Shown here: positions 22,353 to 56,700 of the stretch, piece by piece
Layout of the letters: each line of letters begins with the position of its first letter
Position numbering within the stretch: the stretch's first letter is position 1
Assembly (NCBI GenBank): GCA_964057225.1
Contig: CAXKVF010000072.1
Coordinates: 558,001-622,000 of the forward strand
Direction of reading: 5' to 3'
DNA length: 64,000 bases
Origin: Auanema rhodensis
Taxonomy: Eukaryota; Animalia; Nematoda
Translations under genes and position numbers: made by a program
Notes under the pieces: generated by a model
The model's input: the letters and a program-made list of their open reading frames with translations, nothing else
Database searches by the model: none
Told to the model about the DNA's origin: nothing

Positions 22353-24973
22353 ATAAATTAAAGTTCACGTAAATTTCAAAGTCATGGTTACCATGAACCA
22401 ATGTCAATAAAAATTTGTTTTTAGACTAATATGGACATGGGGAATCTAATTTTGAAAACCGCATCTCTTTATCTTTCACGTGAAGCGAGTTACATACCAA
22501 GTGCACATCACGTGTACATTTAATTAGCATAAATTAAAGTTCACGTAAATTTCAAAGTCATGGTTACCATGAAGCAATATCAATAAAAATTTGTTTTTAG
22601 ACTAATATGGACATGGGGAATCTAATTTTGAAAACCGCATCTCTTTATCTTTCACGTGAAGCGAGTTACATACCAAGTGCACATCACGTGTACATTTAAT
22701 TAGCATAAATTAAAGTTCACGTAAATTTCAAAGTCATGGTTACCATGAACCAATATCAATAAAAATTTGTTTTTAGACTAATATGGACATGGGGAATCTA
22801 ATTTTGAAAACCGCATCTCTTTATCTTTCACGTGAAGCGAGTTACATACCAAGTGCACATCACGTGTACATTTAATTAGCATAAATTAAAGTTCACGTAA
22901 ATTTCAAAGTCATGGTTACCATGAAGCAATATCAATAAAAATTTGTTTTTCGACTAATATGGACATGGAGAATCTAATTTTGAAAACCGCATTTCTTTAT
23001 CTTTCACGTGAAGCGAGTTACATACCAAGTGCACATCACGTGTACATTTAATTAGCATAAATTAAAGTTCACGTAAATTTCAAAGTCATGGTTACCATGC
23101 ACCAATATCAATAAAAATTTGTTTTTAGACTAATATGGACATGGGGAATCTAATTTTGAAAACCGCATCTCTTTATCTTTCACGTGAAGCGAGTTACATA
23201 CCAAGTGCACATCACGTGTACATTTAATTAGCATAAATTAAAGTTCACGTAAAGTTCAAAGTCATGGTTACCATGAAGCAATATCAATAAAAATTTGTTT
23301 TTAGACTAATATGGACATGGGGAATCTAATTTTGAAAACCGCATCTCTTTATCTTTCACGTGAAGCGAGTTACATACCAAGTGCACATCACGTGTACATT
23401 TAATTAGCATAAATTAAAGTTCACGTAAATTTCAAAGTCATGGTTACCATGAACCAATATCAATAAAAATTTGTTTTTAGACTAATATGGACATGGGGAA
23501 TCTAATTTTGAAAACCGCATCTCTTTATCTTTCACGTGAAGCGAGTTACATACCAAGTGCACATCACGTGTACATTTAATTAGCATAAATTAAAGTTCAC
23601 GTAAATTTCAAAGTCATGGTTACCATGAACCAATATCAATAAAAATTTGTTTTTAGACTAATATGGACATGGGGAATCTAATTTTGAAAACCGCATCTCT
23701 TTATCTTTCACGTGAAGCGAGTTACATACCAAGTGCACATCACGTGTACATTTAATTATCATAAATTAAAGTTCACGTAAATTTCAAAGTCATGGTTACC
23801 ATGAACCAATATCAATAAAAATTTGTTTTTAGACTAATATGGACATGGGGAATCTAATTTTGAAAACCGCATCTCTTTATCTTTCACGTGAAGCGAGTTA
23901 CATACCAAGTGCACATCACGTGTACATTTAATTAGCATAAATTAAAGTTCACGTAAATTTCAAAGTCATGGTTACCATGAACCAATATCAATAAAAATTT
24001 GTTTTTAGACTAATATGGACATGGGGAATCTAATTTTGAAAACCGCATCTCTTTATCTTTCACGTGAAGCGAGTTACATACCAAGTGCACATCACGTGTA
24101 CATTTAATTAGCATAAATTAAAGTTCACGTAAATTTCAAAGTCATGGTTACCATGAAGCAATATCAATAAAAATTTGTTTTTCGACTAATATGGACATGG
24201 AGAATCTAATTTTGAAAACCGCATTTCTTTATCTTTCACGTGAAGCGAGTTACATACCAAGTGCACATCACGTGTACATTTAATTAGCATAAATTAAAGT
24301 TCACGTAAATTTCAAAGTCATGGTTACCATGCACCAATATCAATAAAAATTTGTTTTTAGACTAATATGGACATGGGGAATCTAATTTTGAAAACCGCAT
24401 CTCTTTATCTTTCACGTGAAGCGAGTTACATACCAAGTGCACATCACGTGTACATTTAATTAGCATAAATTAAAGTTCACGTAAAGTTCAAAGTCATGGT
24501 TACCATGAAGCAATATCAATAAAAATTTGTTTTTAGACTAATATGGACATGGGGAATCTAATTTTGAAAACCGCATCTCTTTATCTTTCACGTGAAGCGA
24601 GTTACATACCAAGTGCACATCACGTGTACATTTAATTAGCATAAATTAAAGTTCACGTAAATTTTAAAGTCATGGTTACCATGAACCAATATCAATAAAA
24701 ATTTGTTTTTAGACTAATATGGACATGGGGAATCTAATTTTGAAAACCGCATCTCTTTATCTTTCACGTGAAGCGAGTTACATACCAAGTGCACATCACG
24801 TGTACATTTAATTAGCATAAATTAAAGTTCACGTAAATTTCAAAGTCATGGTTACCATGAACCAATATCAATAAAAATTTGTTTTTAGACTAATATGGAC
24901 ATGGGGAATCTAATTTTGAAAACCGCATCTCTTTATCTTTCACGTGAAGCGAGTTACATACCAAGTGCACATC

Positions 24974-24977
24974 ACGT
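24974..24977. repeat. Left copy of ACGT target-site duplication
   Basis: ACGT immediately precedes the foreign sequence; all uninterrupted monomers have a single ACGT at this position. Confidence 0.9.
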
Positions 24978-25117
24978 ACTCGTTTCTTTACATATATCAA
25001 GCCAATTATTATTATGTATGTTTGTATTGTAAGGTTCTTCTGTATATCTTTAATTTTCTCTAATTATTAACACTATTTCCGCTCTTAACCTGTGATTCGA
25101 ACAATAAACCCGTTCAA
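24978..25117 (+). mobile_element. 140-bp non-satellite insertion with 4-bp target-site duplication (ACGT); probable retroelement-derived fragment (5'-truncated non-LTR 3' end, or atypical solo LTR), family unidentified
   Basis: The normal site reads GCACATC-ACGT-GTACATTT. Here it reads GCACATC-ACGT-[ACTCGTTTCTTTAC...ACAATAAACCCGTTCAA]-ACGT-GTACATTT. The monomer register shifts by exactly 144 bp (next monomer expected at 24993, seen at 25137), which equals 140+4. The insert is about 29% GC and T-rich on the + strand, with AATAAA at 25103-25108. It has no TIRs, no TG..CA termini and no poly(A) tail. The insertion itself is certain; mobile-element origin and strand are inferred. Confidence 0.7.
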
Positions 25118-25121
25118 ACGT
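25118..25121. repeat. Right copy of ACGT target-site duplication
   Basis: ACGT immediately follows the foreign sequence and continues into GTACATTTAATT with no satellite bases lost. Confidence 0.9.
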
Positions 25122-28100
25122 GTACATTTAATTATCATAAATTAAAGTTCACGTAAATTTCAAAGTCATGGTTACCATGAACCAATATCAATAAAAATTT
25201 GTTTTTAGACTAATATGGACATGGGGAATCTAATTTTGAAAACCGCATCTCTTTATCTTTCACGTGAAGCGAGTTACATACCAAGTGCACATCACGTGTA
25301 CATTTAATTAGCATAAATTAAAGTTCACGTAAATTTCAAAGTCATGGTTACCATGAACCAATATCAATAAAATTTTGTTTTTAGACTAATATGGACATGG
25401 GGAATCTAATTTTGAAAACCGCATCTCTTTATCTTTCACGTGAAGCGAGTTACATACCAAGTGCACATCACGTGTACATTTAATTAGCATAAATTAAAGT
25501 TCACGTAAATTTCAAAGTCATGGTTACCATGAAGCAATATCAATAAAAATTTGTTTTTAGACTAATATGGACATGGGGAATCTAATTTTGAAAACCGCAT
25601 CTCTTTATCTTTCACGTGAAGCGAGTTACATACCAAGTGCACATCACGTGTACATTTAATTAGCATAAATTAAAGTTCACGTAAATTTCAAAGTCATGGT
25701 TACCATGAACCAATATCAATAAAAATTTGTTTTTAGACTAATATGGACATGGGGAATCTAATTTTGAAAACCGCATCTCTTTATCTTTCACGTGAAGCGA
25801 GTTACATACCAAGTGCACATCACGTGTACATTTAATTAGCATAAATTAAAGTTCACGTAAATTTCAAAGTCATGGTTACCATGAACCAATATCAATAAAA
25901 ATTTGTTTTTAGACTAATATGGACATGGGGAATCTAATTTTGGAAACCGCATCTCTTTATCTTTCACGTGAAGCGAGTTACATACCAAGTGCACATCACG
26001 TGTACATTTAATTAGCATAAATTAAAGTTCACGTAAATTTCAAAGTCATGGTTACCATGAAGCAATATCAATAAAAATTTGTTTTTAGACTAATATGGAC
26101 ATGGGGAATCTAATTTTGAAAACCGCATCTCTTTATCTTTCACGTGAAGCGAGTTACATACCAAGTGCACATCACGTGTACATTTAATTAGCATAAATTA
26201 AAGTTCACGTAAATTTCAAAGTCATGGTTACCATGAACCAATATCAATAAAAATTTGTTTTTAGACTAATATGGACATGGGGAATCTAATTTTGAAAACC
26301 GCATTTCTTTATCTTTCACGTGAAGCGAGTTACATACCAAGTGCACATCACGTGTACATTTAATTAGCATAAATTAAAGTTCACGTAAATTTCAAAGTCA
26401 TGGTTACCATGAACCAATATCAATAAAAATTTGTTTTTAGACTAATATGGACATGGGGAATCTAATTTTGAAAACCGCATCTCTTTATCTTTCACGTGAA
26501 GCGAGTTACATACCAAGTGCACATCACGTGTACATTTAATTAGCATAAATTAAAGTTCACGTAAATTTCAAAGTCATGGTTACCATGAAGCAATATCAAT
26601 AAAAATTTGTTTTTAGACTAATATGGACATGGGGAATCTAATTTTGAAAACCGCATCTCTTTATCTTTCACGTGAAGCGAGTTACATACCAAGTGCACAT
26701 CACGTGTACATTTAATTAGCATAAATTAAAGTTCACGTAAAATTCAAAGTCATGGTTACCATGCACCAATATCAATAAAAATTTGTTTTTAGACTAATAT
26801 GGACATGGGGAATCTAATTTTGAAAACCGCATCTCTTTATCTTTCACGTGAAGCGAGTTACATACCAAGTGCACATCACGTGTACATTTAATTAGCATAA
26901 ATTAAAGTTCACGTAAATTTCAAAGTCATGGTTACCATGAACCAATATCAATAAAAATTTGTTTTTAGACTAATATGGACATGGGGAATCTAATTTTGAA
27001 AACCGCATCTCTTTATCTTTCACGTGAAGCGAGTTACATACCAAGTGCACATCACGTGTACATTTAATTAGCATAAATTAAAGTTCACGTAAAATTCAAA
27101 GTCATGGTTACCATGAAGCAATATCAATAAAAATTTGTTTTTAGACTAATATGGACATGGGGAATCTAATTTTGAAAACCGCATCTCTTTATCTTTCACG
27201 TGAAGCGAGTTACATACCAAGTGCACATCACGTGTACATTTAATTAGCATAAATTAAAGTTCACGTAAATTTCAAAGTCATGGTTACCATGCACCAATAT
27301 CAATAAAAATTTGTTTTTAGACTAATATGGACATGGGGAATCTAATTTTGAAAACCGCATCTCTTTATCTTTCACGTGAAGCGAGTTACATACCAAGTGC
27401 ACATCACGTGTACATTTAATTAGCATAAATTAAAGTTCACGTAAATTTCAAAGTCATGGTTACCATGAACCAATATCAATAAAAATTTGTTTTTAGACTA
27501 ATATGGACATGGGGAATCTAATTTTGAAAACCGCATCTCTTTATCTTTCACGTGAAGCGAGTTACATACCAAGTGCACATCACGTGTACATTTAATTAGC
27601 ATAAATTAAAGTTCACGTAAATTTCAAAGTCATGGTTACCATGAACCAATATCAATAAAAATTTGTTTTTAGACTAATATGGACATGGGGAATCTAATTT
27701 TGAAAACCGCATTTCTTTATCTTTCACGTGAAGCGAGTTACATACCAAGTGCACATCACGTGTACATTTAATTAGCATAAATTAAAGTTCACGTAAATTT
27801 CAAAGTCATGGTTACCATGCACCAATATCAATAAAAATTTGTTTTTAGACTAATATGGACATGGGGAATCTAATTTTGAAAACCGCATCTCTTTATCTTT
27901 CACGTGAAGCGAGTTACATACCAAGTGCACATCACGTGTACATTTAATTAGCATAAATTAAAGTTCACGTAAATTTCAAAGTCATGGTTACCATGCACCA
28001 ATATCAATAAAAATTTGTTTTTAGACTAATATGGACATGGGGAATCTAATTTTGAAAACCGCATTTCTTTATCTTTCACGTGAAGCGAGTTACATACCAA

Positions 28101-53560: not shown

Positions 53561-53745
53561 GGAATCTAATTTTGAAAACCGCATCTCTTCATATTTCACG
53601 TGAAGCGAGTTACATACCAAGTGCACATCACGTGTACATTTAATTAGCATAAATTAAAGTTCACGTAAATTTCAAAGTCATGGTTACCATGCACCAATAT
53701 CAATAAAAATTTGTTTTTAGACTAATATGGACATGGGGAATCTAA

Positions 53746-53751
53746 TTTTTT
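53746..53751. other. Single 177-bp monomer (TTTTG changed to TTTTTT, net +1 bp)
   Basis: TCTAATTTTTTAAAACCG replaces TCTAATTTTGAAAACCG, and the downstream register shifts by +1. Confidence 0.85.
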
Positions 53752-56700
53752 AAAACCGCATCTCTTTATCTTTCACGTGAAGCGAGTTACATACCAAGTG
53801 CACATCACGTGTACATTTAATTAGCATAAATTAAAGTTCACGTAAATTTCAAAGTCATGGTTACCATGCACCAATATCAATAAAAATTTGTTTTTAGACT
53901 AATATGGACATGGGGAATCTAATTTTGAAAACCGCATCTCTTTATCTTCCACGTGAAGCGAGTTACATACCAAGTGCACATCACGTGTACATTTAATTAG
54001 CATAAATTAAAGTTCACGTAAATTTCAAAGTCATGGTTACCATGAACCAATATCAATAAAAATTTGTTTTTAGACTAATATGTACATGGGGAATCTAATT
54101 TTGAAAACCGCATCTCTTCATATTTCACGTGAAGCGAGTTACATACCAAGTGCACATCACGTGTACATTTAATTAGCATAAATTAAAGTTCACGTAAATT
54201 TCAAAGTCATGGTTACCATGAACCAATATCAATAAAAATTTGTTTTTAGACTAATATGGACATGGGGAATCTAATTTTGAAAACCGCATCACTTTATCTT
54301 TCACGTGAAGCGAGTTACATACCAAGTGCACATCACGTGTACATTTAATTAGCATAAATTAAAGTTCACGTAAATTTCAAAGTCATGGTTACCATGCACC
54401 AATATCAATAAAAATTTGTTTTTAGACTAATATGGACATGGGGAATCTAATGTTGAAAACCGCATCTTTTTATCTTTCACGTGAAGCGAGTTACATACCA
54501 AGTGCACATCACGTGTACATTTAATTAGCATAAATTAAAGTTCACGTAAATTTCAAAGTCATGGTTACCATGAACCAATATCAATAAAAATTTGTTTTTA
54601 GACTAATATGGACATGGGGAATCTAATTTTGAAAACCGCATCTCTTTATCTTTCACGTGAAGCGAGTTACATACCAAGTGCACATCACGTGTACATTTAA
54701 TTAGCATAAATTAAAGTTCACGTAAATTTCAAAGTCATGGTTACCATGAAGCAATATCAATAAAAATTTGTTTTTAGACTAATATGGACATGGGGAATCT
54801 AATTTTGAAAACCGCATCTCTTTATCTTTCACGTGAAGCGAGTTACATACCAAGTGCACATCACGTGTACATTTAATTAGCATAAATTAAAGTTCACGTA
54901 AAATTCAAAGTCATGGTTACCATGCACCAATATCAATAAAAATTTGTTTTTAGACTAATATGGACATGGGGAATCTAATTTTGAAAACCGCATCTCTTTA
55001 TCTTTCACGTGAAGCGAGTTACATACCAAGTGCACATCACGTGTACATTTAATTAGCATAAATTAAAGTTCACGTAAATTTCAAAGTCATGGTTACCATG
55101 CACCAATATCAATAAAAATTTGTTTTTAGACTAATATGGACATGGGGAATCTAATTTTGAAAACCGCATCTCTTTATCTTTCACGTGAAGCGAGTTACAT
55201 ACCAAGTGCACATCACGTGTACATTTAATTAGCATAAATTAAAGTTCACGTAAATTTCAAAGTCATGGTTACCATGCACCAATATCAATAAAAATTTGTT
55301 TTTAGACTAATATGGACATGGGGGATCTAATTTTGAAAACCGCATCTCTTTATCTTTCACGTGAAGCGAGTTACATACCAAGTGCACATCACGTGTACAT
55401 TTAATTAGCATAAATTAAAGTTCACGTAAATTTCAAAGTCATGGTTACCATGCACCAATATCAATAAAAATTTGTTTTTAGACTAATATGGACATGGGGA
55501 ATCTAATTTTGAAAACCGCATCTCTTTATCTTTCACGTGAAGCGAGTTACATACCAAGTGCACATCACGTGTACATTTAATTAGCATAAATTAAAGTTCA
55601 CGTAAAATTCAAAGTCATGGTTACCATGCACCAATATCAATAAAAATTTGTTTTTAGACTAATATGGACATGGGGAATCTAATTTTGAAAACCGCATCTC
55701 TTTATCTTTCACGTGAAGCGAGTTACATACCAAGTGCACATCACGTGTACATTTAATTAGCATAAATTAAAGTTCACGTAAATTTCAAAGTCATGGTTAC
55801 CATGCACCAATATCAATAAAAATTTGTTTTTAGACTAATATGGACATGGGTAATCTAATTTTGAAAACCGCATCTCTTTATCTTTCACGTGAAGCGAGTT
55901 ACATACCAAGTGCACATCACGTGTACATTTAATTAGCATAAATTAAAGTTCACGTAAATTTCAAAGTCATGGTTACCATGCACCAATATCAATAAAAATT
56001 TGTTTTTAGACTAATATGGACATGGGGAATCTAATTTTGAAAACCGCATCTCTTTATCTTTCACGTGAAGCGAGTTACATACCAAGTGCACATCACGTGT
56101 ACATTTAATTAGCATAAATTAAAGTTCACGTAAAATTCAAAGTCATGGTTACCATGCACCAATATCAATAAAAATTTGTTTTTAGACTAATATGGACATG
56201 GGGAATCTAATTTTGAAAACCGCATCTCTTTATCTTTCACGTGAAGCGAGTTACATACCAAGTGCACATCACGTGTACATTTAATTAGCATAAATTAAAG
56301 TTCACGTAAAATTCAAAGTCATGGTTACCATGCACCAATATCAATAAAAATTTGTTTTTAGACTAATATGGACATGGGGAATCTAATTTTGAAAACCGCA
56401 TCTCTTTATCTTTCACGTGAAGCGAGTTACATACCAAGTGCACATCACGTGTACATTTAATTAGCATAAATTAAAGTTCACGTAAATTTCAAAGTCATGG
56501 TTACCATGCACCAATATCAATAAAAATTTGTTTTTAGACTAATATGGACATGGGTAATCTAATTTTGAAAACCGCATCTCTTTATCTTTCACGTGAAGCG
56601 AGTTACATACCAAGTGCACATCACGTGTACATTTAATTAGCATAAATTAAAGTTCACGTAAATTTCAAAGTCATGGTTACCATGCACCAATATCAATAAA

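Follow-up and report, generated by a model that had tools for sequence, protein, structure and literature searches.

The question raised by this locus is what the single piece of foreign DNA in a satellite array is, and whether its position was reached by chance. The window, that is, the whole 64-kb stretch of DNA that was analysed, is an array of a 176-bp satellite (AT-1), and 140 bp at 24978-25117 are the sole non-satellite DNA in it. A conserved 15-mer of the satellite was used as an anchor word and its spacing was followed across the whole window. The spacing was a multiple of 176 throughout, except for one distance of 320 (176+140+4) at 24847-25167 and one +1 indel, and TRF likewise split the 176-bp array at 24977/25118. 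The earlier note, which had called the insert the only non-satellite DNA in 64 kb, was thus borne out. Once 24978-25121 was taken out, the array was in phase again. The monomer rebuilt without the insert, which carries the variant 175G>T, was equal over 176/176 nt to five uninterrupted monomers (starting at 23585, 39921, 40625, 42033 and 42737), confirming the claim that no satellite bases were lost. The insertion lies at monomer position 158-161, within ATCACGTGTAC, and the ACGT core of the palindrome is duplicated at 24974-24977 and 25118-25121, as the same note had read it. The order across the site is ...CATCACGT / ACTCG...CCCGTTCAA / ACGTGTACATTT..., and the features are as follows.

23585-23760, + strand: unoccupied paralogue of the host monomer at a distance of 7 monomers upstream; its ATCACGTGTAC is intact (ACGT at 23742-23745)
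24817-24977, + strand: left part of the host AT-1 monomer, positions 1-161, ending in the left ACGT
24974-24977, no strand: left ACGT copy, the centre of the palindrome CACGTG (monomer positions 157-162)
24978-25117, + strand: the 140-bp insert, the 3'-terminal part of a longer repeated element, truncated on its 5' side
25083-25117, + strand: last 35 nt of the element, common to a second family at 88% or more (from contig alignments)
25103-25108, + strand: AATAAA, 9 nt before the 3' junction (position by pattern)
25118-25121, no strand: right ACGT copy, where the satellite restarts with GTACATTT; a contig of run X6 crosses this junction
25122-25136, + strand: remainder of the host monomer on the right (positions 162-176), with 175G>T

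In Auanema rhodense, AT-1 is an autosomal-terminal repeat that is present on all autosomes, forms multi-megabase blocks at the autosome ends, and is lost from the soma by elimination that starts at the 12-cell stage (bioRxiv 10.64898/2026.08.27.747507). The FISH probe published for AT-1, ACATACCAAGTGCACATCACGTGTACAT (bioRxiv 10.64898/2026.08.27.747507), matches the monomer consensus exactly and covers the insertion site; the insert therefore sits in DNA restricted to the germline of this species or a very close relative. The array is about 98% uniform in its 176-bp monomer, which holds two CACGTG palindromes and a further ACGT inside CACGTA. The consensus 20-mers with the palindromes at monomer positions 125-130 and 157-162 were kept in 329/361 and 344/361 monomers, respectively, and rare variants altered the hexamer itself (CATGTG, CAAGTG and CACGTA). 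About 700 intact target hexamers are present in the window, against only one insertion.

The composition of the insert (T 61, A 39, C 26 and G 14 of 140 bases) agrees with its earlier description as T-rich on the + strand, and AATAAA was found where it had been placed, 9 nt before the right junction. Its termini are ACTCGTTTC and TTGAACGGG, the outermost letters being AC...AA. No terminal repeats, inverted or direct, were found in the insert, which also lacks TG..CA ends and TC..CTRR ends, again as described before. A 3' tail, either poly(A) or a short repeat, is absent, and the insert ends in ...CCCGTTCAA. Such a tail-less end does not exclude membership of the LINEs, because R1, R2 and CR1-type groups need no tail.

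Frame 1 of the insert is open for 30 codons, up to a TAA at 25068. The protein-family search of the insert gave only a sub-threshold chance hit to the Pfam family YtcA (E 0.011), so that there is no sign of coding. Neither Rfam (E-value up to 10) nor ARAGORN detected a tRNA, an rRNA or a SINE head in 24700-25400 and 24800-25300; the Rfam search returned two chance-level lncRNA hits, both in the satellite. An RNA fold signal was missing on both strands of the insert (z-scores 0.02 and 0.91), the + strand being predicted to form only a 4-bp GAAC/GUUC stem (z-score 0.02) whose GTTC arm is altered in the second family described below. Inside the insert, the best look-alikes of the target site were no better than those in shuffles. 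The segment 24978-25003, with which the insert begins (26 bases), did not occur a second time in the window, even when 3 mismatches were allowed. The minus strand of the insert showed a 16/19 AT-rich match to the satellite, which was set aside as low-complexity.

Relatives of the insert were sought in public sequencing runs, and five of the nine sampled insert words were found in six runs from three studies with three organism labels, none of them an RNA run. The contigs of four of these six runs (three studies) were aligned on 24898-25197 with a likeness cut-off of 88%. One contig per run (224, 284, 309 and 315 nt) matched 24978-25114/25115, and these contigs, here called family 1, agreed with the insert at 137/138 positions over 24978-25115, the sole change being 25063 A>T. 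In all four runs, the match ended exactly at 24978, and the contigs went on to the left of it for 86, 147, 171 and 147 nt with sequence unlike the satellite or any part of the window; no second piece of these contigs was listed on the satellite flank. On the other side, the family-1 contig of X6 (record 29) passed the right junction and ran 28 nt into the satellite, to 25145. In three of the four runs, the family-1 contig halted at 25114/25115, 2-3 nt short of the element end; the copies therefore diverge there, in the last bases or at the exact junction.

A second and more diverged version, family 2, was represented by record 14 of X4 (687 nt) and record 30 of X6 (362 nt), and X5 has it too. 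The match of these contigs was confined to 25083-25144/25145 and contained 3 changes plus 4 gap letters. Within 25083-25117, they carried one inserted A, three deleted bases and a G>A at 25112; no change was listed inside AATAAA (25103-25108), which is apparently kept. Upstream, 301-627 nt of family 2 were too unlike the insert to align at 88%. From 25118, family 2 ran into the satellite, the junction being exact to within 1-2 nt given the alignment gaps. The summed contig depth climbed stepwise from 25078 to 25117 in all four runs, which would follow if several versions had the last 35-40 nt in common. Since the last 35 nt are the sole part common to the diverged family 2, they are a candidate for the recognition end of the reverse transcriptase, judged from the alignments. 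The depths of both contig families were modest and alike, and the copy number may therefore be low. An exact-pattern scan of metagenome and prokaryote contig collections for the last 24 nt of the insert gave 0 hits.

The 140 bp thus represent the 3' terminus, constant among copies, of a longer repeated element, and the copy in the window has been shortened from its 5' side. The contigs reach upstream by 86-171 nt in family 1 and by up to 627 nt in family 2 while sharing the right end, and the same right end is followed by the same satellite junction. This is part of the outcome that the earlier note had named as a test, a common 3' end with variable 5' ends, and it appeared in all four runs. 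Of its two proposals for the identity of the insert, the 3' end of a longer element stood and the solo terminal repeat fell. Target-primed reverse transcription by a non-LTR retrotransposon is recognised by a 3' end that stays constant while the 5' side is truncated, together with a short target-site duplication and the absence of terminal repeats. Here, copies with a constant 3' end and variable 5' truncation were found in the contigs of the four runs, and the target-site duplication is present without terminal repeats. Accordingly, the insert is very probably a dead, 5'-truncated copy of a site-specific LINE-type retrotransposon that was integrated by target-primed reverse transcription at the CACGTG at positions 157-162 of AT-1. 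The insert probably corresponds to a LINE 3' UTR, and its sense strand is the + strand of the window. The copy has no function of its own; it is the fossil of a single, young insertion.

A non-autonomous element with a LINE tail would look the same. The insert might accordingly be a fragment or copy of a short, SINE-like retroposon of a few hundred bases that borrowed both its 3' end and its machinery from a satellite LINE. The continuous element sequence in the contigs is only 224-315 nt in family 1 and 362-687 nt in family 2, and the shared last 35 nt are the kind of tail that SINEs borrow. However, the length of a contig is set by branching of the assembly graph, not by the element, and no tRNA-, 5S- or 7SL-like part lies in or near the insert, so we consider this origin improbable; were it true, the mechanism and its meaning would be nearly unchanged. 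Endonuclease-free repair, in which a piece of LINE DNA, RNA or cDNA was copied or captured to close a double-strand break of the satellite, would suit a short insert in a satellite array, such arrays being prone to breaks. Endonuclease-independent captures are usually without target duplications and have ragged 3' ends, whereas this insert has a clean 4-bp duplication with no loss, and its 3' end and junction are the same as in the longer copies and in family 2. Such repair filler is a rather remote prospect here. The related idea that the earlier note had given as its main alternative, a repair insertion templated by one unique locus or an organelle genome, is hard to square with a diverged family 2 at the same junction.

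Other classes of insert are harder still to reconcile with these junctions. Some LTR integrases give a 4-bp duplication, which would suit a solo LTR, and the insert is AT-rich like nematode mitochondrial DNA, which would suit an organelle-derived insert (NUMT). The insert has neither TG..CA ends nor TIRs, and other copies extend past its left end but not past its right end, which argues against a solo LTR and a MITE. A NUMT is opposed by the recurrence of two diverged versions at one satellite base and by the lack of any rRNA or tRNA match. Helitrons make no duplication, and a Helitron fragment was rejected given the 4-bp duplication and given ends and a site that differ from TC...CTRR between A and T. 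Altogether, a solo LTR, a MITE, a Helitron fragment or a NUMT is very unlikely. Finally, an artefact of assembly, through a chimeric read or a mis-join, could be suspected because no public run was listed for the 2 sampled words of the 60-nt left junction of the window copy, and no contig bridging it was listed in the four runs. That search rested on these 2 words, however, and contigs drop rare variants, so that the missing left junction is not evidence against the locus. A mis-join would yield neither an exact 4-bp duplication in an in-phase monomer nor a stop exactly at the natural 3' junction of the element, and this explanation is scarcely credible.

If the insert is a LINE copy, as we consider very probable, its position deserves attention. 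In the window copy, the 3' end of the element, ...AATAAACCCGTTCAA, adjoins the satellite ACGTGTAC, and this junction, 25117/25118, is common to three versions in the same orientation: the window copy, a longer family-1 copy and family 2. Repeated insertion at monomer position 158-161, which the earlier note had named as support for target specificity, was thus observed, the longer family-1 copy and family 2 both joining the satellite there. Apparently independent insertions were thus found at the same nucleotide and in the same orientation, the pattern expected of target specificity. With sites chosen at random among the 352 combinations of position and orientation, the chance that two further events hit the same one is about 1e-5, a figure which assumes that the three versions are separate events. 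They are argued to be separate because their 5' ends differ and their sequences have diverged; nevertheless, the copies that share the junction could partly be duplicates from satellite amplification and not separate insertions.

The junctions allow a mechanism to be proposed. The endonuclease of the element would nick CACGT^G on the bottom strand, so that an end reading ...GTACACGT-3' becomes the primer. Reverse transcription would begin at the 3' end of the RNA and, in the copy seen here, would have halted early, after 140 nt. The top strand would then be nicked at the mirror CACGT^G, 4 bp off, and fill-in would produce the ACGT duplication. Given the palindromic site, an enzyme with a single nicking specificity could cut both strands. 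With AATAAA only 9 nt from the end and no A-tail on the integrated copies, transcripts may extend into the satellite and terminate there, carrying a read-through tag (ACGUGUAC...). This tag might anneal to the nicked target and thereby fix the exact 3' junction and the orientation; such pairing of a read-through tag with the target has been described for R1/R2-type elements. Both the nick geometry and the read-through pairing may apply to this element, as far as the junctions indicate. It is quite possible, though somewhat short of probable, that LINEs of one lineage, comprising at least two diverged families, home to a single exact CACGTG of AT-1 as a germline-only safe haven created by programmed DNA elimination, with the palindrome nicked on both strands and read-through satellite RNA setting the junction.

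We compared the AT-1 element with the target-specific non-LTR clades, both the APE-type R1/Tx1 elements (R1, TRAS/SART, Waldo, Mino, Kibi/Koshi and Keno) and the RLE clades (R2, R4, NeSL, CRE and Utopia/YURE). Like these, it uses one exact base of a multicopy tandem sequence in a fixed orientation, has a precise, tail-less 3' junction and is frequently 5'-truncated. Unlike theirs, its target is a non-genic 176-bp satellite that is restricted to the germline and lost from the soma. R2 leaves a small deletion and R1 gives a 14-bp duplication; the AT-1 element appears to make a symmetric cut in the CACGTG palindrome with a 4-bp duplication, and its clade may differ.

A different resemblance is to the CR1/L2-group LINEs (chicken CR1, and Sam and Frodo of C. 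elegans), which have no poly(A), heavy 5' truncation and short or absent duplications, and in which a conserved 3'-terminal stretch is common to diverged subfamilies. The AT-1 element is similarly tail-less and 5'-truncated and has a 3' stretch common to diverged families. Unlike members of the CR1 clade, whose 3' UTR ends in a hairpin plus a short tandem repeat, the insert has neither a terminal microsatellite nor a clear 3' hairpin. CR1-group elements are not known for site-specific integration; should the two families belong to this group, they would bring target specificity to a group not known for it.

Retroelements enriched in centromeres or inside satellite arrays are also represented by Drosophila G2/Jockey-3 and plant CRM, which the AT-1 element resembles in this respect. 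Those elements prefer regions, or are guided by chromatin, and do not return to one nucleotide position, whereas the junction of the AT-1 element is base-exact in three separate versions. The targets of known target-specific non-LTR families are multicopy genes, microsatellites and telomeric repeats, and YURE prefers a U2-derived satellite (PMC4640811). The reported target-specific families belong mainly to early-branched, Tx1 and R1 groups (PMC4640811), and a target-specific element of the CR1 group would therefore be outside the reported groups. Concerning the host, reverse-transcriptase genes have been described in the eliminated DNA, and transposable element-type domains occur in half of the eliminated protein-coding genes, with no such targeting reported (bioRxiv 10.64898/2026.08.27.747507). 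Our search of the literature on satellite-targeting LINEs in nematodes with DNA elimination found nothing specific, and no published account of such elements in A. rhodense was found.

Taken alone, the insert is an ordinary dead-on-arrival LINE fragment, and it becomes moderately interesting within the wider pattern. Its value is that of a clean, young and independently truncated event with an empty paralogue 1.2 kb away, at a base that others have reused, and it strengthens the case that the retrotransposons of A. rhodense include some directed at a satellite lost from the soma. If the targeting is true, the AT-1 element would be a testable example of a mobile element that exploits programmed DNA elimination as a safe haven, and a simple system for a LINE endonuclease that uses a palindromic site for both nicks.

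The age of the insertion can be bracketed from the array itself. The site lies in a 7-monomer (1232-bp) duplicate that differs by 1 base in about 1.4 kb from its upstream partner, and this partner is empty. Since a near-identical partner is empty and the insert differs at only 1/138 positions from the family contigs, the insertion is younger than the last local duplication of the array. The array as a whole has a nested higher-order structure, with 96 distinct monomer types among 362. Runs of monomer types repeat at a distance of 32 monomers (5632 bp), monomers 60-77 and 92-109 being one instance, and shorter periods of 3 and 4 monomers are present in other parts of the array. The sole length variant is a 177-nt monomer at about 53649-53825, in which AATTTTGAAAACC is changed to AATTTTTTAAAACC, with an additional 44A>C. 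In each of the four public runs, the satellite variant 24945 T>G accounted for about 4-11% of the depth of satellite contigs, and it is therefore a common monomer subtype across samples.
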